Origin: Rebecca billardiae RCC1528
Lineage: Eukaryota > Protista > Haptophyta
DNA length: 64,000 nucleotides
Direction of reading: 5' to 3'
Assembly (NCBI GenBank): GCA_965240325.2
Contig: OZ251223.1
Coordinates: forward strand, 3,224,001-3,288,000
The notes beneath the pieces are model-generated. The model made no database searches. It was not told where the DNA came from and worked only from the letters and a program-made list of their open reading frames with translations. Made by a program: the position numbers and the translations under genes. Each line of letters starts with the position of its first letter. The stretch's first letter is position 1. Shown here piece after piece: positions 26,481 to 62,227 of this stretch.

Positions 26481-26820
26481 TAGCACTTTAGTATGGGGGT
26501 ACCTACGACCGGGAGCAGTACTTACCGCCGCAAGTACGACGACGGCGTCCCACTCAAGTTGTGATAGAATCAGCATTGTCAGGAATACGTCGAATTAGCG
26601 CGAACTTGAAAAGAATACCTAACGTTGATTACCGATCGTTAGACCAGTACCCCCATACCCGGAAAGCGGGTTCGATCGACGCCAGAGCTGCAGCTGGCGA
26701 GCGGCCTGGCGCGGAAGGCAATTGGCATTGGCAAAGCCGGCCGTCTTCCGGCTGGACCTGAACAAGTGGGACGTCCCTGCTGGAGCTGGGAAGCGGCCGA
26801 GCAGGCCGCCGCGGCGCGCT

Positions 26821-29800
26821 ATGCCGTGGCACGTGGGTGGCATGCTCACCGCCCGCGTGAACCTCCTCGTCGTCACCGACCCAGGGCCCGATCCCGATGA
26901 CGTCAAGGCAGCCCTTGTGGCGGCGATGCTGCACAACGCCCGTAAGAGCGGCGTCCGGCTGCGAGGTCTCGTGGCGAATGGGGGCCATCAGCCGCGCGAG
27001 CGAGCGCGGCTTGCGCGAGCCCTCCTCGACCATGTCGGTGCGGGAGACGTGCCCGTCGGGTTCGGTTCGATGGGCAAGCCGCACACCGCCCAGCCGCACG
27101 AGTTCTCGCTGGCGGGGTACGATGCGGTGGATGACAGCCGCCTCCTGAGCGGCGCCGAGCTCATCAGGCGCGCGCTGCGCACGGCACCAAGGCAAAGCCT
27201 CACTGTTGTGCTCATCTCGGGGATGACGGACTTCGCCGACGCGATCCGCGAGGCGCCTGATCTTGTGGTGCGCAAGGTCGCGCACGTGTGCATCCAGGGT
27301 GGCCTCGAGCTGGCTGACTCGAGCCCGCTGGGCCGACGGCTGAGCGGCGTGGGCGCTGCGTACGCGCTCGACACGAGCGTGAACAACCAGTTCGACCCAG
27401 AGTCCGCTGCGCAGGTGTACAGCTTTTGCTTCGAGCGCGGCGTGCGCATGTCCGTCGTCTCGCGCAACGCTGTGCCGCTGCTGCCCATGCAGCTCGCCAA
27501 GTCTTTCGCGATGCGCAGCCGCTGCCCGGTGATGGCGTACCTGAATGCGGCGCAGTCCAAGGGGCTCGAGGGGCTGTGGCGCAAGCTGTGCGCGGGCATA
27601 CTGCCGCCACGCTGTACCAAGCAGTGGTACTTCGAGACGTTCTGCGGCGTCGGCCCCGCGGACTTTGCCACGCGCGGGTACGAGCGGCTGGACGCGGACA
27701 CGGACATTGCACAGCACCTGAACGGCTTCGTCAAACCGTGTGCGCTGCGACGGCCACGCGGCGGGGCGCGGTGTGGCGCTGCGCGCCGGCCCACGGCGCT
27801 GACGGCCTCGCTGCTGCGCGCCCTCGCCCCGCGGCGCGTGCCTCCACGCGCGCCTTGCTCCCGACCGCGCGCGCGGCAGGTACGACGTGGTGGCGCTCAT
27901 GATGGCGCTGCCGCAGGCGGCGCGCGTCGTGCCCCGCGGCGCACACGTCGTCGTGCAGGCGGACGCAGAGGGCGGGCACCGGCTGGTCACGCACCGGCTG
28001 CTACTCGAGAAGCAGCACGCTATTCCCATCCAGCCGGTGCTGCAGCTCCTGCGCGCGACGTACCACGACGTCGTTCTCGCCACGGCCTCCCGCGCCACAG
28101 GCGCCCACCTCGGTCGCAGGGCGGCGCGCGCTCTCGGGCTCAGGCGCTGGTCCAACCTCGAGCTGGAGGAGGCCGTGTCCGAGCCGACGACGGGCGGCAG
28201 CCAGGCGGAGACCGCCTCTGCGGGCCGCTTCCCCTGGCTCGGCGGTCTGCGGGGGTCCTCTGAGTACAGCCCGTCCGCGGAGGCGGGCGTGGACGTGCCC
28301 GGCCGCTCGTTCTCGTCCGCCGTGCAGCGCGGCGCGGACGGGCTGTTGTCGGCGCACGCGCTGTCACAGCTGTGCCAGGACGCGTTCGAGGACGCGCGGA
28401 GTGCGCTGTCGAGCCCGCTCCTCATCATGGGCTTGCTCGCGACCCTTGCGTTCCTGCTGAGCTTCGCCGCGCAGATCTTTGTTATGAGTTTCCGCGCGTT
28501 TGTCCGGCCGCCGCCCGCGTTGGCGCCGGTGATGCGCACGCTGAACGGCGTGCTCACGCGGGCGGCAGCGGTGGGCTTCACCCTCGCGTTCGTCTGCGGC
28601 GGCGTCGCTCTGCAGCCGTCGCGCAGCCACCGCAGCGGCGTGCTCGCGCTCACCTCCGCCATGCTGGTCTTCTCGGGCTACTTCACGTACTTCATGACCA
28701 ACTACGCGATCGGCTTTTGGGGCTTCCGCGAGGCTGTGGGAGGCGGCTTTGACATTTGCCCGGCCGCGCGGGTCGACAGGGGCCTCACCGCACTGGTCGG
28801 GGCGACCCAGTTGCTCCTTGCTTGCGTGTCGGCGGCGCCGCTGCTGCTGCTGAGCGTCGAGCTGCTCGCGCAGCCGCCGCGGTCGCGCGAGCTGCTCCGC
28901 CTGACGTGGACCTGCTTTGGCGCGCGCTCGCTCGTCGCCGGGCTGATCAACGCACTCGTGCTGATCCGTTGTGCCTCCTACTCCGACTTTGAGGGCAGCG
29001 CGGCCTTCCCCATGGGCTGGGTGCTCTGCGCTGTCCAGTGGGGCGCGGCCGTGCTCATGCTGTGGCCGGGCACGCTCTCGACGCGCGAGCGCTTGCAGCT
29101 GAGGCTCGCGACGATGCGCGCAAGCGCCTCCGACATCGCCCCACTCGCCGCGCTGCTTGGGCTCTCCGCTGACGGCGTGCTCGCGCCGCGCCGTGCGGTG
29201 CGCATCGCCCTTGGTCTCTTCGACGCGCCCGAGCTCGGGCCTGACGCGCGCTGCGTGCTCGAGTCCAGGGCGGCGCGTGCGATGGTGGTGGTGGCGACGG
29301 CGGGCGAGGGCAGCGCTCGTGGCGCGGAGGCTGATCTCGAGCTCGCCGTGATCGATCCGATCGAGCCCGCCCCCCACGCCAGCCCAGCTGCGGCGATCGC
29401 ACCTGAGCTCTCGTGGCCGGCCCCTGAGGGCAGCTTCATGCGCGGCGCGGGGCTGCACAGCGAGGTGCGTGCCGAGGCGAGGGTGGGCAAGGCGGCTGCC
29501 TCCCCCGCAGGCGTGCTCAACGCCGAGAGCAAGGAGAGTGGCCGCGCCGCTGCCGACGACCGGCTGCTCCCGACCGCCGACGCGTATGTCGTGCACGCTG
29601 CCGCGGACGACTTTGCTGCTCGCGCGCGCGCGCTCAACCGCTGGGCGGCCGCGTTCGCGAGCGAGCACGGGCGGTCGCCGCGTGTCTGGGTGCAGTGGGA
29701 GCACGCAGACCCGGGCCTCACCCCGGAGGAGAGGCTCGCTCACCTGCCCACGTACCTGGGGCGCTCCCGCCGGCTGCTCCTGCTCGCGGGGCCGCGGCTC

Positions 29801-46293: not shown

Positions 46294-49200
46294 CTATACG
46301 CGGTTGCGTTCTCGGGGCGGGGGCGGGCTCGCGCTAGGGCAATGGATGCCGTTGCCGGGCGGGGTCGAGGTCGCGTTGGCTGAGCCGCCGTTCGGGACCG
46401 CAGCGCTCTGCGAGCTCGCCCGGCGCGAGCCAGCCGCGCCAGCGGCGTCCCCACCCTGCTCGTCGATCGAGGCTGGCATCCACGAGACATTGTCCAGGTG
46501 CACGTTGTTCTCGTCCACGAGGGCAAACTTGCCCGACACGCTCGGCTGCTTCACGCCGCGCGACGCCTCGGGCTGCGGGTCGCCCATCTTGTAGCCCGCG
46601 CGCACAAAGGCCATGCGCGCGGCGTGGAACGCGCGCTCGATCAGGTCCTGCCCGCCGCTGCTCTGGCGCAGCTGGCCGGGCCGCTCGCGCAGCCGCTTGC
46701 CCAGGTAGTCGTAGAAGCCGAGCGAGAAGGCGCGCGCGGCCGCGTCGTCGACGATCGTCGTCCAGCAGATCACGCGCAGCCGCGGCAGCTCCTTGACGAT
46801 GTAGCGCGCGAGGTGGTCGGAGCAGCACGCGTTGAGGAACACGCACTGCAGCCGGCCCATCGGCCGCAGCAGCCGCACGAACTCGTCGGGGCGCGGCACC
46901 TGCGCTGTGCCGTCCTCGAGCTCAAAGAGCAGCGTGCCGCCGATCACGCCCGCGCCGAGCGCGTGCCCCGAGAACTGCAGCACGCGCGGCAGGTGCTCGC
47001 TGAGCGGCACCTCGACCGACTCTGGGAACTTTGCGGCCGGGCGGATCACGCGCTGCCCCTCGGGCACCTCGCGCTGCAGGTCCATCAGCTCGCGCATCAG
47101 CTTGAGGTGGGGCACGGCGCGGCGGTCGCGCAGCCGCACGGGCGAGGAGAAGATCGCGAGCACCTCGATCTGCTTGCGCTGCACCGTGTCCTCCGCCGGG
47201 CGGAAGAACTGCTTGTTGAGCACCTCGAAGAGCTGCGGCCGCTCGGCCGGGCTCGCGCGCAGCATCGGCAGCACGATGCGCAGGCAGCGCTCCTGCTCGC
47301 TCGTGTGCAGCCAGCCCGCGCAGCGCCAGCGCACGAGCGCGTCGGTCAGCCCGCCGTCCCTGGCGCGCCAGCGCGTCGCCGACGGCATCCGCTCGAGCTT
47401 GGGCGGCGAGCTCCGCGGCGGCCACGGCTCGGTGTGCGGGTTGAAGAAGGGGCGGAGCGTGAAGAGCTCGTACAGCACCAGCCCGCACGAGAAGACGTCC
47501 ACGGACGGCATCAGCGTCAGCAGGTCGCGCGCCTCGGGCTCGGGGGCGAGGGCGGTGGCGGCGCGCTGCGCGGCCGGGCCGAGCGCGCCGACCGTGCTCG
47601 CGCCGGGCACCGCGCCCGGCGCGCCCGAGGCCAGCGCTGACGCAGCGTGCGCCGCGCACGAGTTGACGGCGGGCGCGGACGCGGTGCGCGCGGCCGCCGG
47701 CGTGCCGAGGCCGGGCGGCGCGGAGCACCGGCTGCCGCGCGCTCGCGCGAGGAGGCGCGCGACCTCGGGCGCGCAGTAGCCCTCCGTGTATGCGGGCCTG
47801 TCCACCGCCGTGCCCACCGCCGCCGCCGCGCCGAAGTCGATCAGCTTCCAGTACCCGCGGAAGCGCAGGAAGTGCGCGGGCTTGAGGTCGAGGTGGACGA
47901 CGCCGAGCGAGTGCAGCGCGTTCACCAGGGTGAGCACGCGCTTCGCCGTGGCCGCGATCGAGAGCGGGCAGCGCGCGTCGGCGCCGCCCGCCCGGATCGA
48001 GCGGATGTAGTCGGCGAGCGAGTTGGACGTGTCCGCCGCCTCCATCACGAGCACGTACGCCGTCTCGCCGCCCGTGTCCGAGTGGTCGTCGTCGAAGGAG
48101 CCGACGACGCGCGGCGCGACGTGCGGCCCGACCAGGCCCATCACCTCCTTCTCGTGGTCGCGCTCCTCGAAGGAGGAGAAGTACTTGAGCGCGACGCGGT
48201 CGCCGGTGGTCTTGTCGGTGGCGAGGCGCACGACCGAGCGCTTCTCCTCCGACTCGCCGCGCTCGGCCGAGCGCTCGGGCAGCGGCGCGTGGTCGACGTA
48301 CCGCTCGGCGATCGTGGTGGGCGCGTGGTCGGCGGACGCGCGGCCCGCGCCGAGCGTGACGTGAGCGTCCCGCGCGAGCGCCTGCATGCGGGACCAGAAG
48401 CGCTCGGGGCAGAGGTCGTGCGGCCTGTTGCCGTCGACGTCGCACTGGCTGGCGAGCGAGGCCGCCCACGTGATCAGCTCGACGCACGCGTTCTCCTGCT
48501 CCGCCATCGCCGCGACGTGCAGCGCGTTCTGCTGCCGCGCCGTGCGCGCGTGCACGTCCACGCCCACCTCGCGCAGACGGCGGATCAGCTCAATCTCGCC
48601 GCGGCGCGCGGCGAGGTGCAGCAGCGTCTCGCCGCCGTGCTCGGCGGACTGCGCGCGGAGCAGCTCGCGCGCGACGGCCGCGCCGCCCTCCGCCGCGCCG
48701 CCGAGCAGCTCCGACGACGAGGTCGCCGTGAGCGTCAGCAGCGACTCGAGGCGCGAGCTCGAGGCGCTCTGCCCCACGCCCGCGACGCCCGCGCCGCCGG
48801 CGGCGCCGCCGTCCGCGGCCGCGCCGTCCGGCGTGACGGGCGTGCCCGGCGCCGAGCTCGGCTGCTCGGCGGAGCGAGCGGGCGTGGCGTCGGCTGCGCA
48901 CAGGCCAAAGCTCGCGCGCGAGCCGCCGCCGCCCAGCGGCGCGATCGGCGAGCCCAGCGTGCGCGCGCCACCGCGCTCGCCGTCCGTGAGCGCCGCGGCG
49001 AGCTTGAGCTCGAGCGCAGCGCACGCGTACATGGCGCCGACGCGCTGGCACTGGCGCGACGAGGAGGCCAGCATGGACATGATCAGGGTGGCCGCGCTGC
49101 GCGGGCTCACGTCGCGCTCGCTCGCCGGGAAGTCGAGCCGACCGCCGGTGGAGCCCGCCGAGCCGCCGAGGTATGCGCCGCCTCCGGCCGTGCCCGTCGC

Positions 49201-51726
49201 ACTGTCCCTCCGCTCCTGCGCGCCGCCGCCCGCGCCGCCGCCGCCGCCGCCTCCGCCGCCGCCGCCGCCGCCGCCGCCGCCCATGCCGCCGCCGCCCATG
49301 CCGCCGCCGCCGCCGCCGCCGCCGCCCAGGCCGCCGCCGCCGCCGCCCTTGGCGCCGGCGGCGTGGGCATGCGCGGCGCGCGCGGCGCCGCCCGCGTGCA
49401 CCAGCGCCTCCGCCGCGGCGGGCCTCGCCCCCGCGCCGCCGCCGCCTCGCGCGCGCGCCCGCGTCGCGCCGCCGCCGCCCCTGCTCGGCTCATCATGCTG
49501 GCCTGTGAGGCACTCCCAAGAGTGCCGCTTCGAGACGCCGTCCACCCACGAGGCGGCGGGCGGGGGCATGCCCACCGTGCTGAGCGAGGCGCGCGGCGGC
49601 GGCGTGTCGGCCGCGGCGTGCGCCGGCGCGCGCGACTCCGCCGCGCTGCCGTCGACCGCCGCGGCCGACACGCCGCCGCCGCCGCCGCCCGCCGCCCGCG
49701 CCGCGCGCGAGTGCGACCAGCGGTCGCCGCACATGGCAAACTGTATCGTCGCGGCGGCGAGGATGAGCTCGCGGCACCAGCGCGCGCTGCGGTTGAAGCG
49801 CTGCAGCGTGGCGGTCTCGTGCGCGCGGTCGAGCGGCGTGCAGCCGAACGCGTCCATCACGTCGAGCGGCAGCCGGCGCAGCAGCAGCTCGGCCACCACC
49901 TCCTCGTTGGCGCACATGGCGCCCAGGTGCAGCAGTGTCTGCCCAAACGCGTCGCGGTGCGCGCGCAGCGGCGCCGCCGCCTCGGCGCGCAGCGCGCCGA
50001 CGTCGGAGGCGAGGACGGAGGCCTCGGCGGCCGGCGCGGCGCGCACCGCCGCGCCGTTCCCCGTGCCCGTGCACCACGCCGGCATGCTCCTGCCCAGCAC
50101 GCCCACCGCCCTCATGAAGGCGTCCAGCTCCCGCTCGTCCGGCATGGACGGCCACGTGCCTTTGCGCGTCGTCGAGAAGGAGCCGGCGCACGAGGCGCGC
50201 ACGGCGGCGGCCTCGATGGGCAGCTTGCGCACGAGCGCGGAGACGAAGGCCGCGACGAACGCGTCCGCAGCGCCGATCACCTGCCCCGAGCCCATGTCCA
50301 CGCGGAACATCGGCACGACGAACACGCGCGCGCGCCTCGCCGCGGCCGCACCGCCCGCCTCCGACGCTCTGAAGGAGGCGTCCTCGGCCGCCCACGCGCC
50401 GCCCGCGCTCGCGCCGGCGGCGGAGGCGTCGGGCAAGGCGGCGGCGGAGGCGTCGCGGTGGGCGGGCGCCTGCGCGCCCGCGCCGGACGCGCCCAGTTCG
50501 GCCGAGGCGCCTTCGCTCGCCGTCAGTGGCGCGTCCGCCTCGCCTTCGCCTTCGCCTTCCGCGGCGCCGTCGCCGCCGGCGCCGCCCGCGCCGTCGCCGC
50601 CCGCGCCGCCGCCCGACTCCGCGCGCGCAAAGCGCTCGCGCCCATCGGCCGAGGCGTGCACGCCGCCGCTCGTGGCGACGATGTGCGCGGCGGGTGTGGT
50701 GAGCACCACCGTGCTGATCCCGAGCGAGCGCAGCTCATTCGCCGCGCGCGCCGCCTCCGCCAGGTCGCGCAGAGGCGTGCCGGTCGCGGTGCCGAGCAGG
50801 TTAGCGGCCTCGTGCTCGTTCGCAAACAGGATGTCGACGTGGCGGAGGAGGGCGGGCGGCGCGTCGGCGGCGGAGGCGCAGGGCGAGGCCTTGAGGACGA
50901 CGGTCTTGCCCCGCTCCGCCGCGAGCTCCGCCGCCTGCACCACCGCCGCGCGCGCCACCTCGAGCTGCAGCACGAGCGCCTGGCAGCGGCTGAGCTCGCT
51001 CTCGAGCAGAGACAGCTCGGGCGCGGCGACCGCTGAGTTGGCGCCCTGGCAGCTGATGGTGAGCTTGGCCTTCTCACGCTGGCTCGCGACGATGACCGCC
51101 ACGCCCGTCGAGTTCTTCTCGTCCCGCTGCACGCCGGACACGTCCACGCGGTACGTGTGCGCCAGCTCGTTGAGGAGGATGTCTGCCGTGGGGTCGTTGC
51201 CGACGCGCCCAATCATGATGGAGCGGATGCCGAGCCGCGCGATGCCCACCGCCTCGTTGGCGCCCTTGCCGCCGGGCGACTGGAAGAAGCGGCCCTTCGT
51301 GTTGCTGCCCACCTGCGGGAACCCCGCCGTCGTCTCCGCGTGCAGGTCCATGTTCAGCGAGCCGAAGACGATCACGCGCGGCGCCGCGATGTCGGGCGAT
51401 CGCGATGGCTGCCTCACCATCAGCGACGACTGCTCATCCGTCGCCACGGGGCGAAGGAGGAGCTGGCGCTGGTCGAGATCAGTTGCCGACGGAGATCGCT
51501 GCTGCGCGCGCGAGAGACGGGGTGGCGGCGTCGCCGGACCCGACTCGGCGCTGGCAGGCGACGCCGCAGGCGGTGCGTCATCTGCGCTTGTAGCCTCACT
51601 GCCGCCGCCGGGCGGCTCGCGCGGCGAAGGCCGCCGTCCGCGCCAAGCGCGCCAGCACGAGACGGCGATCGGCGCGATGGCCGCGGCCAGGCTCAGAAGC
51701 TGCAAGCCCACTGCTCCGCGCTCCAT
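46294..51726 (-). CDS. Multidomain protein: N-terminal TM + ribokinase (PfkB) + ankyrin repeats + Ser/Thr kinase + CHAT (caspase-like) protease
   Basis: PfkB: GSLNMDL, GGKGANEA, GRVGND, NEHE, GAADAF. Ankyrin: GQTLLHL, GETLLHLAA, QNALHVAA. Kinase: VALK, HLDLKP, DFG, APE, DVFSCG. CHAT: VLQFSGH, VFLNAC, W.T.VDD.AA..F...FY. Single uninterrupted ORF. Confidence 0.85.
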   Translation of the reverse strand: MERGAVGLQLLSLAAAIAPIAVSCWRAWRGRRPSPREPPGGGSEATSADDAPPAASPASAESGPATPPPRLSRAQQRSPSATDLDQRQLLLRPVATDEQSSLMVRQPSRSPDIAAPRVIVFGSLNMDLHAETTAGFPQVGSNTKGRFFQSPGGKGANEAVGIARLGIRSIMIGRVGNDPTADILLNELAHTYRVDVSGVQRDEKNSTGVAVIVASQREKAKLTISCQGANSAVAAPELSLLESELSRCQALVLQLEVARAAVVQAAELAAERGKTVVLKASPCASAADAPPALLRHVDILFANEHEAANLLGTATGTPLRDLAEAARAANELRSLGISTVVLTTPAAHIVATSGGVHASADGRERFARAESGGGAGGDGAGGAGGDGAAEGEGEGEADAPLTASEGASAELGASGAGAQAPAHRDASAAALPDASAAGASAGGAWAAEDASFRASEAGGAAAARRARVFVVPMFRVDMGSGQVIGAADAFVAAFVSALVRKLPIEAAAVRASCAGSFSTTRKGTWPSMPDERELDAFMRAVGVLGRSMPAWCTGTGNGAAVRAAPAAEASVLASDVGALRAEAAAPLRAHRDAFGQTLLHLGAMCANEEVVAELLLRRLPLDVMDAFGCTPLDRAHETATLQRFNRSARWCRELILAAATIQFAMCGDRWSHSRAARAAGGGGGGVSAAAVDGSAAESRAPAHAAADTPPPRASLSTVGMPPPAASWVDGVSKRHSWECLTGQHDEPSRGGGGATRARARGGGGAGARPAAAEALVHAGGAARAAHAHAAGAKGGGGGGLGGGGGGGGGMGGGGMGGGGGGGGGGGGGGGGAGGGAQERRDSATGTAGGGAYLGGSAGSTGGRLDFPASERDVSPRSAATLIMSMLASSSRQCQRVGAMYACAALELKLAAALTDGERGGARTLGSPIAPLGGGGSRASFGLCAADATPARSAEQPSSAPGTPVTPDGAAADGGAAGGAGVAGVGQSASSSRLESLLTLTATSSSELLGGAAEGGAAVARELLRAQSAEHGGETLLHLAARRGEIELIRRLREVGVDVHARTARQQNALHVAAMAEQENACVELITWAASLASQCDVDGNRPHDLCPERFWSRMQALARDAHVTLGAGRASADHAPTTIAERYVDHAPLPERSAERGESEEKRSVVRLATDKTTGDRVALKYFSSFEERDHEKEVMGLVGPHVAPRVVGSFDDDHSDTGGETAYVLVMEAADTSNSLADYIRSIRAGGADARCPLSIAATAKRVLTLVNALHSLGVVHLDLKPAHFLRFRGYWKLIDFGAAAAVGTAVDRPAYTEGYCAPEVARLLARARGSRCSAPPGLGTPAAARTASAPAVNSCAAHAASALASGAPGAVPGASTVGALGPAAQRAATALAPEPEARDLLTLMPSVDVFSCGLVLYELFTLRPFFNPHTEPWPPRSSPPKLERMPSATRWRARDGGLTDALVRWRCAGWLHTSEQERCLRIVLPMLRASPAERPQLFEVLNKQFFRPAEDTVQRKQIEVLAIFSSPVRLRDRRAVPHLKLMRELMDLQREVPEGQRVIRPAAKFPESVEVPLSEHLPRVLQFSGHALGAGVIGGTLLFELEDGTAQVPRPDEFVRLLRPMGRLQCVFLNACCSDHLARYIVKELPRLRVICWTTIVDDAAARAFSLGFYDYLGKRLRERPGQLRQSSGGQDLIERAFHAARMAFVRAGYKMGDPQPEASRGVKQPSVSGKFALVDENNVHLDNVSWMPASIDEQGGDAAGAAGSRRASSQSAAVPNGGSANATSTPPGNGIHCPSASPPPPRERNRV

Positions 51727-51806
51727 CGCCGCCACGCGCAGCTCTCGCCGGCGTGGCGCCGGTACTCAAGGACGTGCGTCCACCCCGATTTACAGATTGG
51801 CGGGCC

Positions 51807-51851
51807 ACTACAGTTTACTATGTTTTAACGTGCACACTTGGTTAAGGCGTG
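51807..51851 (+). repeat. Direct copy of 35440-35484
   Basis: 1 mismatch in 45 bp; lies ~80 bp upstream of the CHAT fusion gene. Confidence 0.85.
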
Positions 51852-54800
51852 TACGGGGCCGGTGCAGGTAAAATACAATCAGTCAGTCCATCATCGTCAT
51901 CATTGTCGACAGAGCTCCACGCGCGTACTTTAGTTAGATACTAGCTACAATACCGTACAGTGACGGTATGTTTGACTCGCGTGAAGCCGGCATAGGTGGG
52001 TGCGGCCGCCCGGCGAAGCCGCACGAAGCCGGTGAAGCGGGCGCGCGGTGGCCACGGTCGCGGCGATCCGCGCAGTCTAGCGGGTGGCGAGGCGACAGTG
52101 GGCGCGTCCCAGTCGGTCGCCGACGTGCCGCGCCCTGCCGACCAGCCGCCTTGACGCGATGGCCCGCCGACCCCCGGCGTCCGCCTGGGCCACGTGCACG
52201 CGGCGATTTGAATGAGGCGCGCGCTGCCGGCTGGCAAGGAATTCGACGAGGGCGAGGACGAGGGTGATGAGGAATGGATGGCCGTAGACACTGTGAGCGC
52301 TGGCCTCTCTGCTGACTCCACAGCGCCGCACGCGCACACGTGCAAGCACCCGTCTGGTGCGCCTCCGCATGGCAGAAGGCGGATCGTCCGTGGTGAAGTG
52401 ATCCGGAGATCCCTGGCGTTGAGTCGCCCCCTTCGGCGGAGGCAAGTTGGCGAGGAGTGTGTGCCGACCCGTGCTTCGCCGCGGACCCGTCCGCGTGTGG
52501 CCCCGCGACGTGCGGTCTCGCTGCGCCCCCGCCCAGCATTGCTTGGTGCAGGGCTACCTGGCCGCACACTCGTCAGCAACAGGCTGACGCGGCGACCTGC
52601 GGCTCCAAATGGCAGCAGCGGCGGGGTGCTGGTGGAAGAGCGCCATGCCTTACATAGCCACGGTGTGCGGTCGGCAGGTGCCATCGCCAGTGACCGCCGA
52701 GCGGCGACGGCTGAGCTGAGCTGCATGGCGACTGCGGAGCCCGCCGAGCGTCGAGCCGCGCGCCGCGCCCGGGCGCCCGAATCGGCGGAGGGCAATCGCG
52801 TGGACGGAGTCGGCAGCCTCAGGCCTGCTCGGTTGGTCCGCTCACCCCGCTGCCGCCAGCAAGGAGACTATGCGCTTAGGCTACCGCACATGAGACAGTA
52901 TACGTATGATCGTCGCCGTGCGGTGAATCTCTGGCTGCCCGCGCGCGCGGCGGTGCGCATGCACGGTGGGTGGGCTGATCTGTGATCATCAAGGTCACAG
53001 ATTCCGCCCGCCGATGTTGCTCAATGGCGGCTGACCGTGGGGGTGACTGTGGAGCTGGGGGTGGGAGGTGGGGCATGACGCTCTCCTACTCTTGCCGCAA
53101 GGTCCCTCGCGGTCGTCCCGCGCAGCGATTCCCGCACTCGCCCCTCGCCGTCATCACGCGCCCTCAGCAGCGCGCCGCTGCGCGGCGGCGCGCCCAACCC
53201 AGCCGGGCGGGGCACGCGCTCGCGTTTGCTCCCACCTCGCCCTCGAGACGAGCGCGGGCGGCGGGGCTCCTCCTCCTCCTCCTCTTCCTCCTCCTCTTGC
53301 GCGCGCCGGCGCCGGCGGGGCGGCTCCTCCTCCTCCTCCTCCTCCTCCTCATCCTCGCCGGCGCCGCAGCCGCCGGCAGCGGCGGCGCCGCTGGCGCCGC
53401 CGCCGGAGAGGGGCCGCCGAGGGCCAAGAGGGGCGGGAGGGGCGGCAAGGAGCGCGGCCTGGAATGACCTGCGCGAGCACGGGTGTCGCCGTCGCCGATG
53501 GCGACAGCCGTCTGTCGCCGATGGCGACGGCGCCGGCGCGAATGGCAGCGGACGGTCGCGGGCGCGTCGTCCATGCTGGCTTCAGCGCGGCTTCAGCCCG
53601 CTTCAGCGGGCTTCAGCGGGCGTGAAGCCGCGCTGAAGCCGCACTGCGCGTCGCTTCAACATGGTGCTGTACCATATTGTTGCCCCAAAGCGTATCTGGC
53701 TTCACCCTCTACTAGTAGTATAGAACGTATACAGTAAAGTACGACGATGATGAGCCTTGCTTTGACGATACAATGTTGTACTGTCATGTCTGCACTGCTT
53801 CATGCTTGTCCGACTGGACTGACTGCTGCTGCAACTTGACGTAGCTACGGCGTATCTGTCTAGCACTAGTAGTACGAGACGTCCCCTCCCGTCCGAGTGG
53901 TGAGGGCGATATATATGTCCTATCTCCCGGACTAGACAGACCGTCTGCGACGTGAGACTCCGACTCCGAGGCTTCGATCCGAGTCTGTCACCGAGACTCG
54001 AATGAGTCGAGGGCGGCTTGTGGGCCTGTGGCCAGCCGTGCCGCGTGCGCGCAGAGAGTTAGTCTGATATCGAGAGCCGGTAACGTCACTATTAACGAGT
54101 GGCCCGCCCGGCCGCGCGGCGGACTCGGCGCTCTCATTATCACCGCGACTCCGCGCGCCAGTAGTCCTGGCAGTGACCGCCTTGCAGCAGGGCCGGCAGC
54201 TCAGCAGATGCGCTGCTGCGGCTGCAGCGCTCGCCGCGCCGGAGCCTCCGCCTGTCACAATCAGCGCCCCAGCGGGCGGGCAGCGCGTCGCGCCTCGCAC
54301 GGGCCGTCCCGCGGCGAGTTCTGCACTCCGTCTCCGTAACTACTCGGACTCCGTGACCGTGACCCGGTATTCGGAATACTAGAATAGACTAGCTATATCG
54401 GACGAGTAGTCTATATCCGAGACTACTCCGCCTGCTAGACGTAACTCGGATCAGATGTCAGAAAGTCCCGGCCCGGCGGCCCACATATCACATTTAAGCA
54501 GTTGCATTAACACTGAATTGTGAATAACTGAAATTAATACACTTAAGTACACTACATTCGTAACGACTAACGCCTTACGCCGACTACAGACCGCCCGGGC
54601 GCGCACGGCAGCGCAGCTGCCAGCTGGCAGCACTAGCCACTAGTCCTATTTATAGTTATCCGAACATATCTAATTATATGTATATTTAAAAATACAATAT
54701 TTTTAATTATTAGTTTGTATAGAGCCACCGTCTGGCCAGCAGCCGCAGGGTCGCCAACGGCAGATGCCTGAGATCTATGTGGCCCGAGGCACCCAGTGAT

Positions 54801-54885: not shown

Positions 54886-56406
54886 CTAGTATCGGCCAGA
54901 GGAGAAGCGGCCTGACTTGGTCATATTCCCTTGCGCGGCCTTGAAGTCCTGCGGGTTCTTGGAGTGCTTCGCGGCGTAGTCGGCCTCAACCTGCGTGGCC
55001 TCGAAGTTGATCTTCTCGAGGAAGCCGCGCTTCGCGCCCTTCGCGATCTTTCGGAGCACGGTCGCCTCCTCGTCGTTGCGCCACTTTGCGAGCTCGGCCG
55101 CGACCTCCTTGAAGTCCGGCCGCTTCTTGTGGTCGTCCTGCCATACGCTTTGGATCAGCTTGCGCGCCTCCTCGGGCCACTGCGGCGGGATCGTGGGCCG
55201 GAGCTCGTCGGCTGCGACCTTCTTCGCGATCTCCTCGGTCGAGAGGAACTGGCCCTCGTACGCGCGACCGCGCGTGAGCAGCTCGTACATGATGATGGCT
55301 GCCGGCGCGACCGCCGGGCCGATGGGGGGGGCGGGGGGGCGGCACGAGTGAGCGGGCGTCGCTGGCGCCGGCTGCCGCGACGTGCCGGCGAGCACGCACA
55401 CGCACGCGCGTGACTGCCGCGCGGCGCGGGGCGGGGACCCCCAGCGCGCACCGAACGAGAACTGGTCGTTGGTGCGCGAGTACTCGTCACCCCGGTAGTT
55501 CTCGGGCGCCATGTACCGCATGCTTCCGACCTTGCCAGTCATCTTGAAGTTGGCGAGCCGTGTGCCGCCCTTCTCGAAGGTGACGAGGCCGAAGTCGGCG
55601 ATCTTGGCGGTGCACGCCTCGCCGCACAGCAGGATGTTCTCCGGCTTCAGGTCGCGGTGGATGATCGGCGGCTTGCAGTCGTGCAGGAACGCCATGCCGG
55701 CCGCGATGTGGTACGTCCACCGCAGGCCGTCGCCCACCGTGAACGGCTTGCGCATGTTCGAGGTGGAGTTGACGAGCGGCTTGAGCGTGCCGTACGGCGC
55801 GTACTCCTGCACCAGCGCGATCTGGTCCTGCCCGTTCTCATCCTCCTGCAGCGTCACCCCAATGTAACCGATCACGTTCGGGTGGTGGAGTGACTTGAGC
55901 ATCAGCAGCTCGGAGGCAAAGTCTGCGAGCTCGCGGTCGCCGATGAAGGAGGGCTCGTCCGCCTTGACGACGCCGTCCTTGTCGACGGGGAGCTTCGCTT
56001 TCAGCTTCTTCACCGCCACGAACCCGCCGGCCTCCGCGACCAGCGCCGCGGCGGGGTGGCTGCGCGGCGGCGTGAACCTGCACTGCGTGACCACACCAAA
56101 CGCGCCCTCGCCGAGCACCTTCTCGTGCTTGAGCGACCGGTCATCGATGACCGTGTTCTCGTCCAGGTGCTTCTTGCGGAGCTTCTGGAAGTTGGGCTTG
56201 ACGCCCGTGTTGATGTCGCCCACCAGGCTGTTCAGGTCCTGCCCGGCAGAGAGCTTCTTGACCGTGACCGCCCGGTTGATCGGCTTCTTCCCACCGCCCG
56301 TGCTGCCAGACCGGCTCCGAGGGTCGGCCGAGGAGGGGCGCTTCGGGGCGGCGTCATCGGCAAACGACGTTTTCTTCTGCGTTCCCGAGCCACCGAAGAA
56401 ACCCAT
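54886..56406 (-). CDS. TKL-group (Raf/MAP3K-like) protein kinase (predicted in-frame intron 55299-55451)
   Basis: GEGAFG, VAVKK, HPNVI, HRDLKPEN, DFG, GSMRYMAPE and W..D..KRPDF; starts MG. Confidence 0.9.
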   Translation of the reverse strand: MGFFGGSGTQKKTSFADDAAPKRPSSADPRSRSGSTGGGKKPINRAVTVKKLSAGQDLNSLVGDINTGVKPNFQKLRKKHLDENTVIDDRSLKHEKVLGEGAFGVVTQCRFTPPRSHPAAALVAEAGGFVAVKKLKAKLPVDKDGVVKADEPSFIGDRELADFASELLMLKSLHHPNVIGYIGVTLQEDENGQDQIALVQEYAPYGTLKPLVNSTSNMRKPFTVGDGLRWTYHIAAGMAFLHDCKPPIIHRDLKPENILLCGEACTAKIADFGLVTFEKGGTRLANFKMTGKVGSMRYMAPENYRGDEYSRTNDQFSFGARWGSPPRAARQSRACVCVLAGTSRQPAPATPAHSCRPPAPPIGPAVAPAAIIMYELLTRGRAYEGQFLSTEEIAKKVAADELRPTIPPQWPEEARKLIQSVWQDDHKKRPDFKEVAAELAKWRNDEEATVLRKIAKGAKRGFLEKINFEATQVEADYAAKHSKNPQDFKAAQGNMTKSGRFSSGRY

Positions 56407-56825
56407 TCCTCAGGGCGGTGCTCGCTCGCGGGATCCAGCAGCGGGGCGAAGCGCGGGGTCCTGGCGGTGGGGGGGGCGGGGTCGCGGGCCACGCGAAAAG
56501 GGATCGCTCCCCTCCGACGACGACGGCCCCAAACGCCCGCGCGGCGCGGTCGCCGAACGATTTTGAGCGCTTACCCACATGTACGTAAGATGCCAATTAA
56601 GACGCATATTCGTCGCGTTGTGACGTAACTGTACTGTATTAATTAGGACAGTCCTACTGGTACTTTAGTACCCGCCCTCGGTCGGTTGGTAGAGTGATGA
56701 AACGGTCGGGAGATAACCGTATGTGCGTCCGTTCGTCTGAAACATTTCATCAGCTTGCCGCCCGAATTTTGTCCGCGCTGCTTGATGGCGTCCTTCATGC
56801 AGCCCTGCTCCTTGTGAACCAGGCC

Positions 56826-59800
56826 ATGAGCGCGTTCAGCTTTGGCAGTGCGCCCAAGCTGCCCTCGTGGGCGAGCGGACGGTCGGTGAAGACCGAGGCG
56901 CCAACTGACGCCGGGAACCCTTCCGCGAACGACGCCGCCGACGGTGGAACTGGCGCGCGCGGACCGACGGCGGAGGGCGGGGTGGCGAGCCGCGCAAAGC
57001 CGGGCTCGACCACGGCGCAGGGCACGGTGGTGCCGGCGACACTCAAGGCGGGCGAGTACACAGTGCGGGTGCACGTGCTAGAGGGCCAGCGCTTCGTGTC
57101 GGAGAGCGGCACAATCAACGCCCTCGTCGAGGTGGGCATCGACGGCGTCGGCACGGCCGGCAGCGTGCAGACGCTCCCGGTCGCTAAGTCGGCGGTCATG
57201 CCCGTGTGGGACCAGGAGCTGATCTTCGGGCTGGAGTGCAGCGCGAAGGAGGCGAACAACGCGCAGATCAGCATCGCCGTGTACGACGTGCTCGGCCCCA
57301 CGAGCCTCCTGGGCTTCAACCGCCTGATCGGCAGGTGGCACGTCGAGCTCGCGCACGTGTACGCGCACGAGGGCCACGAGATCTACAAGGACTGGATCGC
57401 GCTCGAGCTGTTGGAGGAGGGCATCGGCGCGCGCGGGCTGCTCAAGCTGACGGTGCAGGTGCTTGGCGACGGCGACGTGCCGCGCGAGCACGCGGCCGGT
57501 GACGACGGCGTCGATGCCGCCACGGCCATGCACCGGCTCGCGGCGGCCGTGCGCGAGCCGTGGTGCTTGGTCGCGCGCGTGCACCGCGCGCACAACATCG
57601 TCAAGACCGACCTGACGGGCCACGCCGACCCGTTCGTCGAGCTGCGCCGCGGGGGCGAGACGGTGCGCACGTCGACGATCAAGAGCACGCCGAGCCCCGT
57701 GTGGGAGCAGCAGATCGAGCTGCCCTTCGTCGAGCCCACGCCGCTGCAGGAGGCGCAGCTCTCGCTGAACGACCACGACTCGCTCAACATGCTGCACGGC
57801 AACGACGTGATCGGCACGCAGACCATCGAGCTGGACAAGCTGGCCGTCGGGACGCGCGAGCCGCCGGAGGACGCGGAGCCGCGCTGGGTGCACCTGTACG
57901 GCGCGCAGCAGGGCGTCGAGGGCGAAATCGCCGCCGCGATGAACGAGGGCCGCATGGAGGGCTACCACTACCGCGGCAGCCTGCTCGTGACGATTTGGAA
58001 GCGGCGCGGCGCGGGCGGCGAGCAGGACACGCGCACGCGCTCGGACGTGCTGCCGCTCGCCGGCGACCTGAAGCGGCAGAAGGGCAAGGTCTCCGTCCGC
58101 AGGGGCTCCACGCCGGGCAGCAGCCTCTCCGCGCCGCCCGGCGTGAACAGGCTGCTCGCGCCGCTCCGGCCCAAGTCGCGCCGGCTGCTGAACGTGCCCA
58201 AGCACCTCAAGCGCAGCGCGGCGCCGCTGACCCAGCCGCCGCCCGACGCCAAGTACGAGCTGCGCGTGTGGCTGCTCAAGGCGGTGGAGGTGGCCGTCGA
58301 CTCGAACGCGTCAGTCGAGGTGGAGATCGGCGGGCACGCCCTCGAGTTCCATGCGAAGGACCCGAGCCGCGGCATGGCGACCTGGCGCGAGAAGCAGCGG
58401 CTGACCGCCGAGCTGCCGAGCGAGCCGGCCGCGCTGCCGGACGTGTGCGTGTACGTGCGGCGCAAGCTGGGCGCCTTCGAGAACACGGCGGAGCGCGCGG
58501 CCGCGGCGATGGGCTTCGACAAAGGGGAGGCGCCGAGGACGACGGAGCGCGTCGGCTGCGCCCGGCTGCCCGCCGCCGCGCTCATCAAGGCGTGCGAGGA
58601 GCACCGCGCCGCGCACCCCGAGTGGGTGCCGCTGCGCTGGCTGCTGCTGCTGCGCGACCACTCGATCGATGAGATCCACAGCGAGCTCGCGGCGTACGTG
58701 CAGATCGGGATCGAGCTCGGCCGCGTGGACGCGCTGGCGAAGGTGGCGTTCAACGACGTGCCCCAGCCCAAGATGCAGGCGCGCCTCCTCGTCGGCAGGT
58801 TCTACCTCGGCCGCTCGCTGCCGCCGCCGCAGCCCAACCCGCACGAGCGCCTCTCCGGGCTGCTCTCGCTCCGCTCGGCCGACGAGGTCGACCCGTTCGC
58901 CGTGATGCACTGCCACGGCGGCCACGTGCGCTCGTCGACGAAGCAGAAGACGCGCAACCCGCGCTGGTACGAGGAGCACTCGACGCTCGTCCAGCTGCCC
59001 AAGAAGGACCACCTCGCGCCGCTCATCCTCCTCACCGTGCACGACTACGCGCTGTTTGGCACGCACAACTCGACGGTCGCGCACGCGTTCCTCAACGTGC
59101 CCGACGTGCGCGTGCGCTCGCTCGAGGCGCTCGACACGGCGCTGCCGGAGTGGGTGCCGCTCTCGTCGATGAACGGCGAGCCGCTCGACGAGGACGCGGG
59201 CGTGCTGATGACCGTCGCGCTCGTGCCGATGGACGAGGCGCCCTCGCCGCCGCGCCCCGTGCGCATCGCCCTCGACGCCGTGCCGGTGGTGGTCGAGCTG
59301 ATCGTGTTTGGCTGCCGACACCTGCGGCCGATGGGCGGGCTCGGCATGTCGATGCGCGCGACGTACGTCGAGGCCGACCTGGGCGACCAGGCGACGCGCG
59401 CCGCGACGCGGCACGCGCGCAAGCAGCCCGCCAACCCCACCTTCGTCGAGGTGCTCAACATCCGCTCCAAGCTCGCCAAGCCCGCCATCCTCGCGCCCAG
59501 GCTCAACCTGCGCGTGCGCTCGGCGCGGCCAGGCCCGCTCGAGGACGCGCTGGTCGGCGTCGCGTACATCGACCTGGGCTCGAGGCTGCCGTGGGTGGAC
59601 GCGGGCGCGAACGGCGCGGCGGAGGCGGGCGCGGACGCGGACGCGCCGCCGCCCAAGCTGGACACGCGCGGGCTGATCGCCTGGCTCACCAAGCTGCGCG
59701 ACCTGCGCGACCGCCTGTTTGGCAGGGACGCGCACGACGAGCCGCCGTCCGCGCTGGCCGGGAGGGCGTTGGAGACGCTCGCGCTCGGGATCATGCCCAC

Positions 59801-62227
59801 GGCGCCGGCGGAGGGCGGCGCGGGGCGCGCGGGGCGGCCGCCGCGCCTCGCCTCGTGTGACGGCACCGAGCAGCTCACCGCCTCCAACACCAAGCTGATC
59901 GTGGACAAGAAGGAGCCCAAAGGGCTGGGCCGGCTGCAGAAATCGATCGACCTCACCACCAGCGTGCTCGGCGAGCCGCCACGCAAGGGCAAGCTGCGCA
60001 AGCCCGAGCCGAGCTACAGCTACGCCGTGCTCGACGGCTCGGACGGCGGGTACGTGCCCGTGCCCGACGAGATCCGCCGGGAGTACCTCGTCGGGCGGGA
60101 GAGCTTCGCCGAGCCGCTCGAGGCGCAGCTGCCGCGCGCGCTCTTTGAGCGGTGGGACCTGAGCGCGCTCGCAGCGCCGAGCGTGTTTGGCACGAGCTCG
60201 CACACGCACCGCGAGAAGGTGGGCGTGTGCAAGGGGATCCTGCGCGTCTACGAGCGCGACCCCACGGCCGAGGACGAGGAGACGGACGAGACGCCGTCCG
60301 AGTCCGAGTCCGACGCGGAGGAGGGGCAGGAGCTCGACGAGGAGCAGGCGGAGCGAGCGATCGCGGCGGCGGCCGTCAGGGCGACGAGGCGCTCGCGCCG
60401 CTCGGCCGTCGTGCGCGTGCGCCGCGAGCGCTCGATGGAGGAGCGGCGCACCGAAATGCGCGAGCTCGCGACGATCACGCCGCTGATCCATCGCGCGCTG
60501 CGCGCGCGCGAGGTCGTCGTGCGCGTGTACGTGCTCTCCGCGCAGGACCTGCTCCCCGCCGACAGCGACGGGCTCGCTGACCCTTACGTGGTGGTGAGCT
60601 TGGGCGACGACAAGGTCGGCAGCGCGGACTGGCGCGAGGAGAACACGCGCGAGCCGCACTTCTTCCGCTGCTTCGAGCTGACGGCCTCGCTGCCGGGCGA
60701 CTCGCAGCTCATGATCATGATCTACGACTGGGATCTGCTCTCGATCGGCGGCGCGCAGCTGATGGGATCGTGCGCGCGCGCGCACCGCGCGCACCGCGCG
60801 CCGCCCGCTCCGCGCGCGCGCGCGCCGCGGCCGCCCACCTCGCGGCCGCCGCGCCCTCGGGCCGCGCGCGCGCGCGCTCAGGACGACCATCGACATCGAG
60901 GACCGGCTGATGAGCGTCGAGTGGCTGCAGGAGCGCAAGAAGCCGATCGAGCGGCGCTGGCTGCGGTGCGCACGCCGCCCGCGTCGCGCCCTCGGCCCGG
61001 GCGGCCGGGCCGCGCCGCGCGACGCGGCGCTGAGCCCGGCGCGCTCCCTCGCCGTGCCCCCGCGCCTCGCCTCCGCCCCGGCCGACGCGCTGCAGCCACC
61101 CCCGCTACGACGCGAGCATGTACCGCGGCTCCGTCGACCTGTGGGTGGACGTGCTCGACGCGCGCACGGCGGCGCGCCTGCCGCCGCTCAACATCGCGCC
61201 GCCCGCTCCCGAGCCGTTTGAGCTGCGGCTGATCGTGTGGCGCACGCGCTACATCCCAAACCTCGACGCCGAGCAGTCGGACCAGTACGTGCGCTGCCGG
61301 CTGCAGCTCGGCGGCGGGCGCAAGCGCCAGGAGGAGAGCACCGACGTGCACTACTTCGCGCGCCGGGGCAAGGCCTCGTTCAACTACCGCATGACCTTTG
61401 ACGTCACGCTGCCGGACGACGCGGAGGCGGCGTCGCTCATCGTGACGGTGCTCGACTTTGACCTGCTCACGCGCGACGACGTGGGCGGCACGGCCAAGCT
61501 CGACCTGCGCAACATGTTCGCGCAGGCGCACCAGCAGCTCGACCAGCTCACGGCGGACGAGCGCGCGCTCACCTTCCCGCTGCTCACGCCCGAGATGCTC
61601 GAGGCGGAGAAGCAAAGGGCGGCGGATGCCGCAGGCGGGGGCGCCGGCGGCAAAATCAAGCGCGGGCTGACCTTCTGGCGCAAGCCGGCCACGGGCGAGG
61701 CGCCACCGCCGTCCGCAGACCGACCCGACGAGGAGCGCGGCGAGGGCGCGGGCGCAGGCGGCGGCGGCGGCGACTTGGACTACCCTGCCGACGGCGCCGA
61801 GGACGGCCTGCGCTGGCAGACGCAGCGCTTCTGGTGCAAGCTCTCCCCGCCGGCGGGCCAGGACCCCGAGACCTTTGAGGGCGAGGTGGAGCTGAGCATC
61901 CAGCTGCTGCCCAAGAGCGTGGCGGACAAGTACCCGGCCGGGCGGACGGGCCGCGACGAGCCGAACACCAACCCTGTGCTGCCCGAGCCGGCGCGCCCGC
62001 CCGCGCTGCGCATGCTCTACTTGGGATGCCAGGCGCTGTGGGACGAGGTCAACGCGATCGTGCCGGTCGAGAAGCTGCTGTGCACCGTCTTCTGCTGCGC
62101 GTGCTGCGGCTTTCTCTTCTTCATTGCCTCGCACTACGGACTGCTCATCTACAGCGCGGCGCGGCGCGCGCGCGACGAGGGCGAGACCTTGGGCGAAGAG
62201 GTCGAGGAGATCGCCGAGGGAGAGTAG
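56826..62227 (+). CDS. Ferlin-like multi-C2-domain tail-anchored protein (predicted introns 60770-60881, 60966-61095)
   Basis: Six or more C2-like domains (DLTGHADPFVEL, DSDGLADPYVVV, STDVHY...FNYR), the ferlin C-terminal GRDEPN.NP.L.EP.RP motif and a single C-terminal TM helix. Confidence 0.88.

Follow-up and report, generated by a model that had tools for sequence, protein, structure and literature searches.

Within a 64,000-nucleotide stretch of the haptophyte Rebecca billardiae RCC1528 (contig OZ251223.1, positions 3,224,001 to 3,288,000; hereafter the window), the minus strand carries a gene whose product (the window protein) joins a ribokinase-derived PfkB domain, ankyrin repeats, an atypical protein kinase and a predicted C-terminal CHAT-type caspase-like protease (Table 1). 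This is a real single haptophyte gene that is largely or wholly unspliced, and, judged from the domain types, its large multidomain product is probably cytosolic. The best overall explanation of its architecture, put forward tentatively, is that a ribose-type ligand sensed by the PfkB domain switches on CHAT proteolysis. From a family-wide comparison of motifs, the ribokinase fold seems to have changed its role from enzyme to ligand-binding domain.

Results

Gene, architecture and homologues

The stop-free frame begins at 51735 (GTG), reaches its first ATG at 51726 and ends at 46294. Because the DNA here is 72-79% G+C, long open frames are cheap, and the length of an open reading frame (ORF) is no proof of a gene, since the antisense plus strand holds ORFs that exceed 1,100 codons and lack any Pfam match. 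These plus-strand ORFs, at 48386-51871 (1,161 codons) and 47647-51036 (1,129 codons), are rich in Pro, Arg, Ala and Ser; considered as genes, they were rejected on their zero Pfam matches as artefacts of high G+C. The minus-strand gene is judged to be real because its domain matches lie in one frame, its codon positions are biased (G+C at the first, second and third positions, GC1/GC2/GC3, of 0.74/0.60/0.95 for the whole gene) and colinear homologues occur in other organisms. The original prediction, made from the sequence before this analysis, was of one ORF of ~1,810 amino acids with PfkB, ankyrin, kinase and CHAT domains, and frame, Pfam, profiles, fold and homologues all bear it out. The motifs it quoted are each in place: GSLNMD at residues 122-127, GGKGAN at 152-157, GAAD at 485-488, HLDLKPAH at 1278-1285, FSGH at 1585-1588 and LNAC at 1631-1634.

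The closest homologue (P0001) has 1,351 residues and is encoded by a complete ORF of a 4.8-kb environmental contig from JGI. Its conserved blocks are all colinear with those of the window protein, with identities of 52-55% in the PfkB domain, ~60% in the CHAT domain and 45% over the region between the start of the second ankyrin cluster and the C-terminus. The Prymnesium parvum protein KAL1507247.1 (P0168; 1,771 aa), annotated as "protein kinase domain-containing protein", has PfkB, ankyrin and Pkinase matches in Pfam and a CHAT-like C-terminus by alignment; its cluster has a short representative, and the protein was reached by way of the cluster's members. A cluster from marine contigs (P0024; 2,277 aa, with relatives up to 2,287) has the same domains and an N-terminal PH domain, the PfkB, ankyrin and kinase parts being recognized by Pfam and the CHAT-like end by alignment. 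Together with P. parvum, the closest named relative is Pavlovales sp. CCMP2436, in which locus MU631406.1 (2782-10766) encodes ankyrin, kinase and CHAT in at least 10 exons in changing frames, with at least 9 introns; this comparison covers the first ankyrin cluster to CHAT, the PfkB part lying beyond the 10-kb flank. Public annotation hides the architecture in CCMP2436 because the locus is split into three annotated genes (228, 295 and 258 aa). As read from these sequences, the number of lineages with the fusion is at least two for named haptophytes and two for environmental sequences.

The architecture is accordingly not unique to this genome, and its homologues in public databases are uncharacterised or hypothetical proteins only. 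Word-indexed searches, run with the complete protein and separately with its PfkB region, found P0001 as the only long protein, and a feature search of the ESM Atlas returned generic ankyrin-kinase clusters only, none with the PfkB-ankyrin-kinase-CHAT architecture. No paper that joins CHAT with ribokinase, PfkB or haptophytes, or that describes the architecture, was found in the literature, in agreement with the earlier statement that no characterised protein of this kind was known.

A ribokinase-derived domain with retained sugar contacts

Applied to the whole protein, Pfam matches the PfkB family in two stretches (residues 117-347 and 468-529) with a score of 144.3 bits against the PF00294 gathering cut-off of 25.8, which places the domain in this family. 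The best matches are ribokinases, namely the Escherichia coli enzyme (1gqt) and the NCBIfam ribokinase family (E 1.2e-51). The equivalog level of ribokinase is not reached, with 175.8 bits vs 299.65 for TIGR02152 and 147.5 vs 341 for NF008353. Among free proteins, the nearest are ordinary ribokinases of ~310 residues with ~41% identity; those with names come mainly from bacteria, and some of lower identity from fungi.

For a comparison of motifs, four fusion proteins (the window protein, P0001, P0168 and P0024) were aligned with ten free ribokinases. The window protein retains the ribose-contact motifs GSLNMD, GGKGAN, Glu256 (the Glu of LQLE) and NEHE, along with the catalytic Asp488, and these residues align with those of E. 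coli ribokinase and of the ten free enzymes. Across the fusion proteins, GS[LI]NMD, the LQLE Glu and the catalytic Asp are present in all four, and GGKGAN and NxxE in three of the four lineages, the P0024 cluster having GGAGAN and SEFD instead. The nucleotide-binding side differs. All ten free ribokinases have [TK][LM]GxxG in the nucleotide loop and DTxAAGD/GCGD at the anion hole, whereas the LGxxG loop and the anion-hole Gly are gone in each of the four fusion proteins. Their nucleotide loop reads TTPAAH (window protein), TTSVAH, TCGVAH or SSVTSH, and their anion hole GAAD (as in the window protein) or ATD. This pattern indicates that the sugar-touching residues are under selection and that the ATP-phosphate and transition-state residues have been lost across the whole fusion family. 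Because the sugar contacts are kept and the nucleotide and anion-hole motifs are lost family-wide, a ligand sensor fits better than a metabolic enzyme, and the family-wide pattern appears to be the strongest evidence here for the ligand-sensor idea. The PfkB domain would then no longer be mainly a metabolic ribokinase, and ribose or a ribose-containing metabolite would be a regulatory input.

Alternatively, the PfkB domain could be a working sugar kinase for ribose, a related pentose or a nucleoside that is tethered to a signalling scaffold, which would make the protein a metabolic enzyme under the control of its own kinase and protease domains and not a ligand-gated protease. This alternative, which is considered unlikely, would account for the ribose contacts, NxxE and catalytic Asp kept in three of the four lineages, for ribokinase as the best family match and for the ordinary ribokinases that are the nearest free relatives. 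It would leave several features unexplained: a family score far under the equivalog cut-off, the absence from every fusion protein of an anion-hole Gly and an LGxxG loop that every free ribokinase compared possesses, the alteration of the GGKGAN Lys and of NxxE in the P0024 lineage, and the splitting of the domain by an insert of 115 residues (~35 in P0001). The sensor reading is consistent with the loss of the nucleotide-side motifs and is preferred.

The C-terminal domain as a CHAT-type protease

From its relatives and its modelled fold, the C-terminal domain is predicted to be a CHAT-type caspase-like protease in which the His/Cys dyad (His1588 and Cys1634) is in place. A phmmer search of the PDB sequences gave one significant match, 8tl0_A, a "CHAT domain-containing protein" (E 2e-4), with FSGH aligned to FIGH and LNACC to LNACC. 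An exhaustive HMMER search of 1.84 billion representatives yielded 1,833 relatives at E <= 1e-3, including 144 at E <= 1e-10. In an alignment of 46 relatives, invariance is limited to four residues (a Pro, a Leu, His1588 and Cys1634), and the profile made from this alignment matches 8tl0_A with an E of 2.9e-18 over profile positions 22-177. The Pfam CHAT model, PF12770, matches 25 of these 46 relatives on their own (E <= 0.01) and 8 of 35 full-length relatives (best E 4e-20).

The AlphaFold2 model built with the 46-relative alignment has a predicted local distance difference test score (pLDDT) of 88.6 and a predicted template modelling score (pTM) of 0.87, and in it His1588 and Cys1634 follow strands 80-87 and 129-133. 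A Foldseek search placed the SAVED-CHAT filament first (E 2e-10), followed by C11 peptidase, caspase-9, legumain, MALT1 and the Craspase TPR-CHAT. Superposition on 8tl0 with VIA-align gave a Z score of 18.4 and a root mean square deviation of 2.4 A over 181 residues with 25% identity, compared with Z scores of ~11.5 for gingipain and caspases-3/6/7/8. Model, fold search and superposition all yielded a caspase-like fold, and the outcome that would have spoken against the original prediction, a C-terminal domain that does not model as such a fold, did not occur. The residues of 8tl0 that align with His1588 and Cys1634 lie 47 apart, as do H375 and C422 of SAVED-CHAT, of which the H375A/C422A double mutant is inactive (bioRxiv 10.1101/2023.06.23.546230). 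The original assignment of a CHAT domain with both dyad residues is upheld by phmmer, the profile and fold searches and the relatives' own PF12770 matches. LRR, NB-ARC, TPR and ANF-receptor domains occur in the 35-sequence set of full-length relatives, and the structurally nearest CHAT clusters outside haptophytes are bacterial, with TIR, NACHT or EAD domains.

An atypical kinase paired with the CHAT domain

The kinase domain scores 73.1 bits against the PF00069 cut-off of 31.7. Its AlphaFold2 model has the canonical bilobal fold and resembles CaMK-type and other kinases, with target-normalised template modelling scores of 0.65-0.78. Lys1181 (VAIK), the alphaC Glu (1192 or 1194), Asp1280 (HxD), Asp1297 (DFG) and the APE motif are retained, the Lys, the Glu and the two Asp residues family-wide. 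The catalytic-loop Asn is replaced by His1285 (HLDLKPAHF), a replacement found in all 12 clusters with the same kinase (HxD[LI]KxxHF), and a low-complexity insert follows the APE motif. A Gly-rich loop upstream of the kinase, sought with the regular expression GxGxx[GAS], was found in none of the relatives tested, and the sole match in the window protein lies 25 residues ahead of the kinase domain. The kinase had been described as having HLDLKPAH and no Gly-rich loop, a description that holds for the window protein and for the family.

Ankyrin-pseudokinase proteins are a known kind, and TEX14-like ones appeared in the ESM Atlas feature search. The kinase, the CHAT domain or both could likewise be non-catalytic (a pseudokinase and a CHAT domain used for assembly only), in which case the protein would be a scaffold and not a protease switch. 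The absence of the Gly-rich loop and of the metal-binding Asn throughout the family would fit such a scaffold, as would the lack of a Pfam CHAT match to the window protein. Nevertheless, this explanation is regarded as quite unlikely, as both dyad residues of the CHAT domain are unchanged in all 46 diverse relatives and correspond to the dyad tested in SAVED-CHAT, and the retention of the kinase Lys, Glu, HxD Asp, DFG Asp and APE is an unusual pattern for a fully dead kinase.

In the 12 protein clusters, the same kinase (HxDxKxxHF, no Gly-rich loop) is located ~210-550 residues before FSGH. The N-termini that precede this pair elsewhere include a SAM plus PARP catalytic domain (P0103, 22 members, marine contigs), an RRM (P0033, EukProt), a PH domain or nothing recognizable. 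A maximum-likelihood tree of the CHAT domains has a 100/100 branch that separates all kinase-linked domains from the non-kinase-linked ones; the LRR, NB-ARC, TPR and ANF-receptor occurrences come from full-length family members and are separate from this tree, the topology of which does not distinguish a single PfkB fusion from repeated ones. Alignments and tree indicate that the kinase-CHAT pair is a conserved two-domain cassette behind differing N-termini in haptophyte-type proteins, and it appears to serve as an output unit whose inputs can be exchanged. The PARP input of P0103 is a second link of the cassette to NAD/ADP-ribose chemistry.

Low-complexity inserts and the continuity of the frame

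From codon 380 onward, at least nine low-complexity inserts without counterpart in P0001 lie between the conserved blocks. Besides the tracts in Table 1, in-frame GC-rich repeats are found at 49638-49704 (period 3; tract to 49708) and 50561-50628 (periods 9-24); the repeat tracts encode poly-Gly and Ala/Gly runs with no counterpart in the closest homologue, and their length likely differs between strains. In a neighbouring protein-kinase ORF (54886-56406, minus strand), an in-frame insert of ~50 codons is located between SFG and IIMYELL, in kinase subdomain IX; it is flanked by GT..AG and is probably an intron that is open in frame. Because of this insert, in-frame introns can hide inside ORFs of this genome. 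The use of GC by codon position as an intron test was discarded as non-discriminating, because the probable intron of the kinase ORF is equally near-uniform.

The 1,810-codon reading could be partly an artefact, either through in-frame introns or through two adjacent genes being read as one. The domain-less stop-free ORFs of more than 1,100 codons on the opposite strand and the probable GT..AG intron of the neighbouring kinase ORF would be in keeping with such an artefact, and so would the near-uniform GC at all codon positions of the inserts missing from P0001 and the many introns of the CCMP2436 orthologue. It is, however, highly improbable. The conserved blocks around at least nine inserts share one frame, and the inserts are very unlikely all to be introns, as the chance of this shared frame would then be ~(1/3)^9. 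Several of the inserts are trinucleotide microsatellites, the same domain order is seen as single products in P0001, P. parvum and the P0024 cluster, and the architecture survives the removal of any insert. One or two inserts could be in-frame introns, which would leave the architecture unchanged.

The N-terminus

The original prediction described the protein as membrane-anchored. This part is doubtful, as the N-terminal ~100 codons are not found in the closest homologue and the coding signal of codons 31-100 is weak. Hydropathy, taken as a 19-residue Kyte-Doolittle mean (KD19), reaches the highest value of the protein, 1.95, for residues 4-24. Read in 20-codon windows, GC3 is 0.85-0.90 in codons 1-30 and 0.6-0.8 in codons 31-100, vs 0.95 gene-wide. 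P0001 lacks the first ~90-100 residues and starts ~40 residues before its own PfkB domain.

In a membrane-anchored, receptor-like switch, Met1 would be the true start, residues 5-26 a signal anchor and the catalytic domains cytosolic. Such a switch is possible, although doubtful. It would agree with the position of the most hydrophobic stretch of the protein just before an Arg-rich stretch, with the good context of the ATG at 51726 (purine at -3, G at +4), with the GC3 of codons 1-30 and with other possible membrane-targeting N-termini in homologues (a Cys cluster in P. parvum, the PH domain in P0024). The missing extension in P0001, the drop in GC3 over codons 31-100 and the presence of Met103 just ahead of the PfkB domain argue against it.

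Ankyrin clusters, other features and neighbouring ORFs

Two ankyrin clusters had been proposed. The second is significant, whereas the first is sub-threshold in Pfam although it is retained in homologues; a DARPin stretch at residues 591-669 supports this first cluster as well. Pfam gave zero matches to a further conserved block, residues 862-905, which lies between the two clusters.

Table 1. Features of the gene on the minus strand, with positions in the window
Feature	Residues	Position	Strand	Basis
Whole ORF		46294..51726	-	1,810 codons from first ATG plus stop codon; every conserved block in one frame
Hydrophobic stretch, then Arg-rich segment; putative signal anchor	5-26	51649..51714	-	KD19 maximum 1.95
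Alternative start	Met103	51418..51420	-	14 codons before PfkB domain, at onset of strong GC3
Ribokinase-derived PfkB domain	117-529	50140..51378	-	Pfam E 6.8e-42; 1gqt E 2e-29
Ala/Gly/Glu low-complexity insert, splits PfkB	353-467	50326..50670	-	Two-stretch Pfam match; tandem repeats
First ankyrin-like cluster, 1-2 weak repeats	590-640	49807..49959	-	Pfam Ank E ~4e-3, below cut-off
(GGC)n trinucleotide microsatellite, encodes poly-Gly		49221..49347	-	Tandem Repeats Finder (TRF) period 3, 42 copies; not in P0001
Conserved block	862-905	49012..49143	-	Kept in P0001, weaker in P0168 and P0024
Second ankyrin cluster	1011-1085	48472..48696	-	Ank_2 E 4.7e-11; Ank E 1.2e-8
Atypical protein-kinase domain	1164-1509	47200..48237	-	Pkinase E 3e-20; canonical kinase fold
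Predicted CHAT-type caspase-like protease domain	1515-1740	46507..47184	-	Homology, profile, fold, dyad
Dyad His codon	His1588	46963-46965	-	
Dyad Cys codon	Cys1634	46825-46827	-	

Downstream, a 1,512-codon ORF (56694-61232, plus strand) appears by eye to be a multi-C2-domain protein of ferlin- or synaptotagmin-like type. At ~18 kb from the gene, an ORF on the plus strand (26722-28260) has a Pfam inosine-uridine nucleoside hydrolase domain (E 2.2e-11). Nucleoside hydrolase is a ribose-releasing type of enzyme, here near a ribose-binding-type domain; this proximity may be a coincidence rather than a functional link.

Discussion

In the proposed mechanism, ribose or a ribose-containing metabolite would bind to the PfkB domain as a regulatory input. 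Binding would alter the conformation or the oligomeric state of the protein, possibly through the kinase domain, and CHAT domains would thereby be brought together and proteolysis switched on. Dimers form through the lids in PfkB domains, and kinase domains are also able to pair. Activation by oligomerisation has a precedent in SAVED-CHAT, which is activated when cyclic tri-adenylate (cA3) induces its assembly into filaments (bioRxiv 10.1101/2023.06.23.546230). By analogy, the protein could plausibly act in stress, immune or cell-death signalling, because CHAT relatives carry LRR, NB-ARC and TPR domains and the bacterial structural neighbours carry TIR, NACHT and EAD domains.

Several observations weigh against this mechanism. 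With its catalytic Asp and NxxE retained, the PfkB domain may have remained an enzyme, and the AAGD of E. coli ribokinase indicates that the anion-hole motif tolerates some variation. The kinase, which has its Lys, its Glu and both Asp residues, may act on substrates by phosphorylation and not serve for dimerisation alone. An AlphaFold2 model of kinase plus CHAT gives confident domains and no confident mutual orientation (pTM 0.63). Finally, Pfam, including PF12770, gave zero matches to residues 1500-1810 at E <= 10.

Haptophytes rank among the major bloom-forming algae, with viruses and programmed cell death keeping their populations in check. To our knowledge, it is not well established which proteases carry out this death. 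In bacterial antiviral defence, CHAT and caspase-like proteases gated by sensors were recently elucidated. As the present gene shows, haptophytes possess close relatives of the bacterial SAVED-CHAT protease, connected to quite different inputs of a eukaryotic style. A broader and rather speculative proposal, to which little confidence is attached, is that the atypical-kinase and CHAT cassette serves across haptophytes as an effector module of immunity or cell death, with ribose- or ADP-ribose-type metabolites as its gate. If so, the inputs of this module would include the ribokinase-derived ribose binder of the present gene and the PARP domain of P0103. The module would represent a eukaryotic counterpart of the bacterial pathways that lead from a nucleotide signal to a caspase-like protease (SAVED-CHAT, TIR plus caspase-like), and would be a candidate for the origin of the caspase-like activities that have been reported in haptophytes infected by viruses. 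With a conserved family, clear catalytic residues and a guessable ligand class, these ideas translate into concrete proteins and point mutants. The PfkB domain would also offer a clean case, deduced from sequence, of the conversion of an enzyme to a sensor through family-wide motif loss.

The comparison with known systems begins with the input domain. Relative to E. coli ribokinase (RbsK; 1RKD/1GQT), the PfkB domain shares the Asn and Asp of GSxNxD, GGKGAN, the equivalent of Glu143, NxxE and the equivalent of the catalytic Asp255. In contrast to RbsK, Gly254 is replaced by Ala, TLGxxG by TTPAAH, and the DT that precedes the anion hole is missing; the domain also contains the 115-residue insert, scores below the equivalog level and is fused to signalling domains.

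The arrangement of ankyrin repeats, a kinase fold and an effector directly after it is shared with RNase L. In RNase L, a ligand on the ankyrin repeats and a nucleotide on the pseudokinase lead to dimerisation, which makes the effector active. IRE1 and the ankyrin-kinase proteins RIPK4, ANKK1, ILK and TEX14 belong to the same comparison, and the nearest clusters in the ESM Atlas feature search were ankyrin-kinase families. Unlike in RNase L and IRE1, the effector here is predicted to be a CHAT protease and not a KEN RNase. The sequence relation seen with these proteins is limited to the generic kinase and ankyrin folds, and the resemblance is one of working, not of membership.

On the output side, the TPR-CHAT protein of the type III-E Craspase (Csx29) and the protease of a bacterial TIR system are likewise gated effectors of CHAT or caspase-like type. 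In the TIR system, an ADP-ribose-derived trigger acts on a caspase-like protease (bioRxiv 10.1101/2024.10.24.620036), and this trigger is conceptually near a ribose-type ligand. The structural similarity to Craspase TPR-CHAT is, however, far weaker (Foldseek E ~1e-3, 7y84 and 8eey), and gating in these proteases comes from an RNA-guided complex or from a TIR protein that is separate from the protease; they have neither a kinase nor a fused PfkB domain.

The closest solved relative of the C-terminal domain is SAVED-CHAT from the type III-B CRISPR/CBASS system of Haliangium ochraceum (8TL0; Steens et al.). Both have a His/Cys dyad (H375/C422 in SAVED-CHAT), and in both a domain of small-molecule-binding type is fused to a CHAT protease. 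In SAVED-CHAT, the SAVED domain binds cA3 and the protein forms filaments, whereas in the window protein a ribokinase-derived domain, ankyrin repeats and a kinase precede the protease. Pfam found no SAVED or CARF domain in the window protein, and the likeness to SAVED-CHAT effectors is in logic only. The window protein is also eukaryotic, with ~1,800 aa and no CRISPR context, and its activation by oligomerisation would be a parallel drawn from the bacterial effector. In summary, the known kind to which the window protein belongs is that of sensor-gated CHAT proteases, and what is new is the ribokinase-like input and the kinase cassette.

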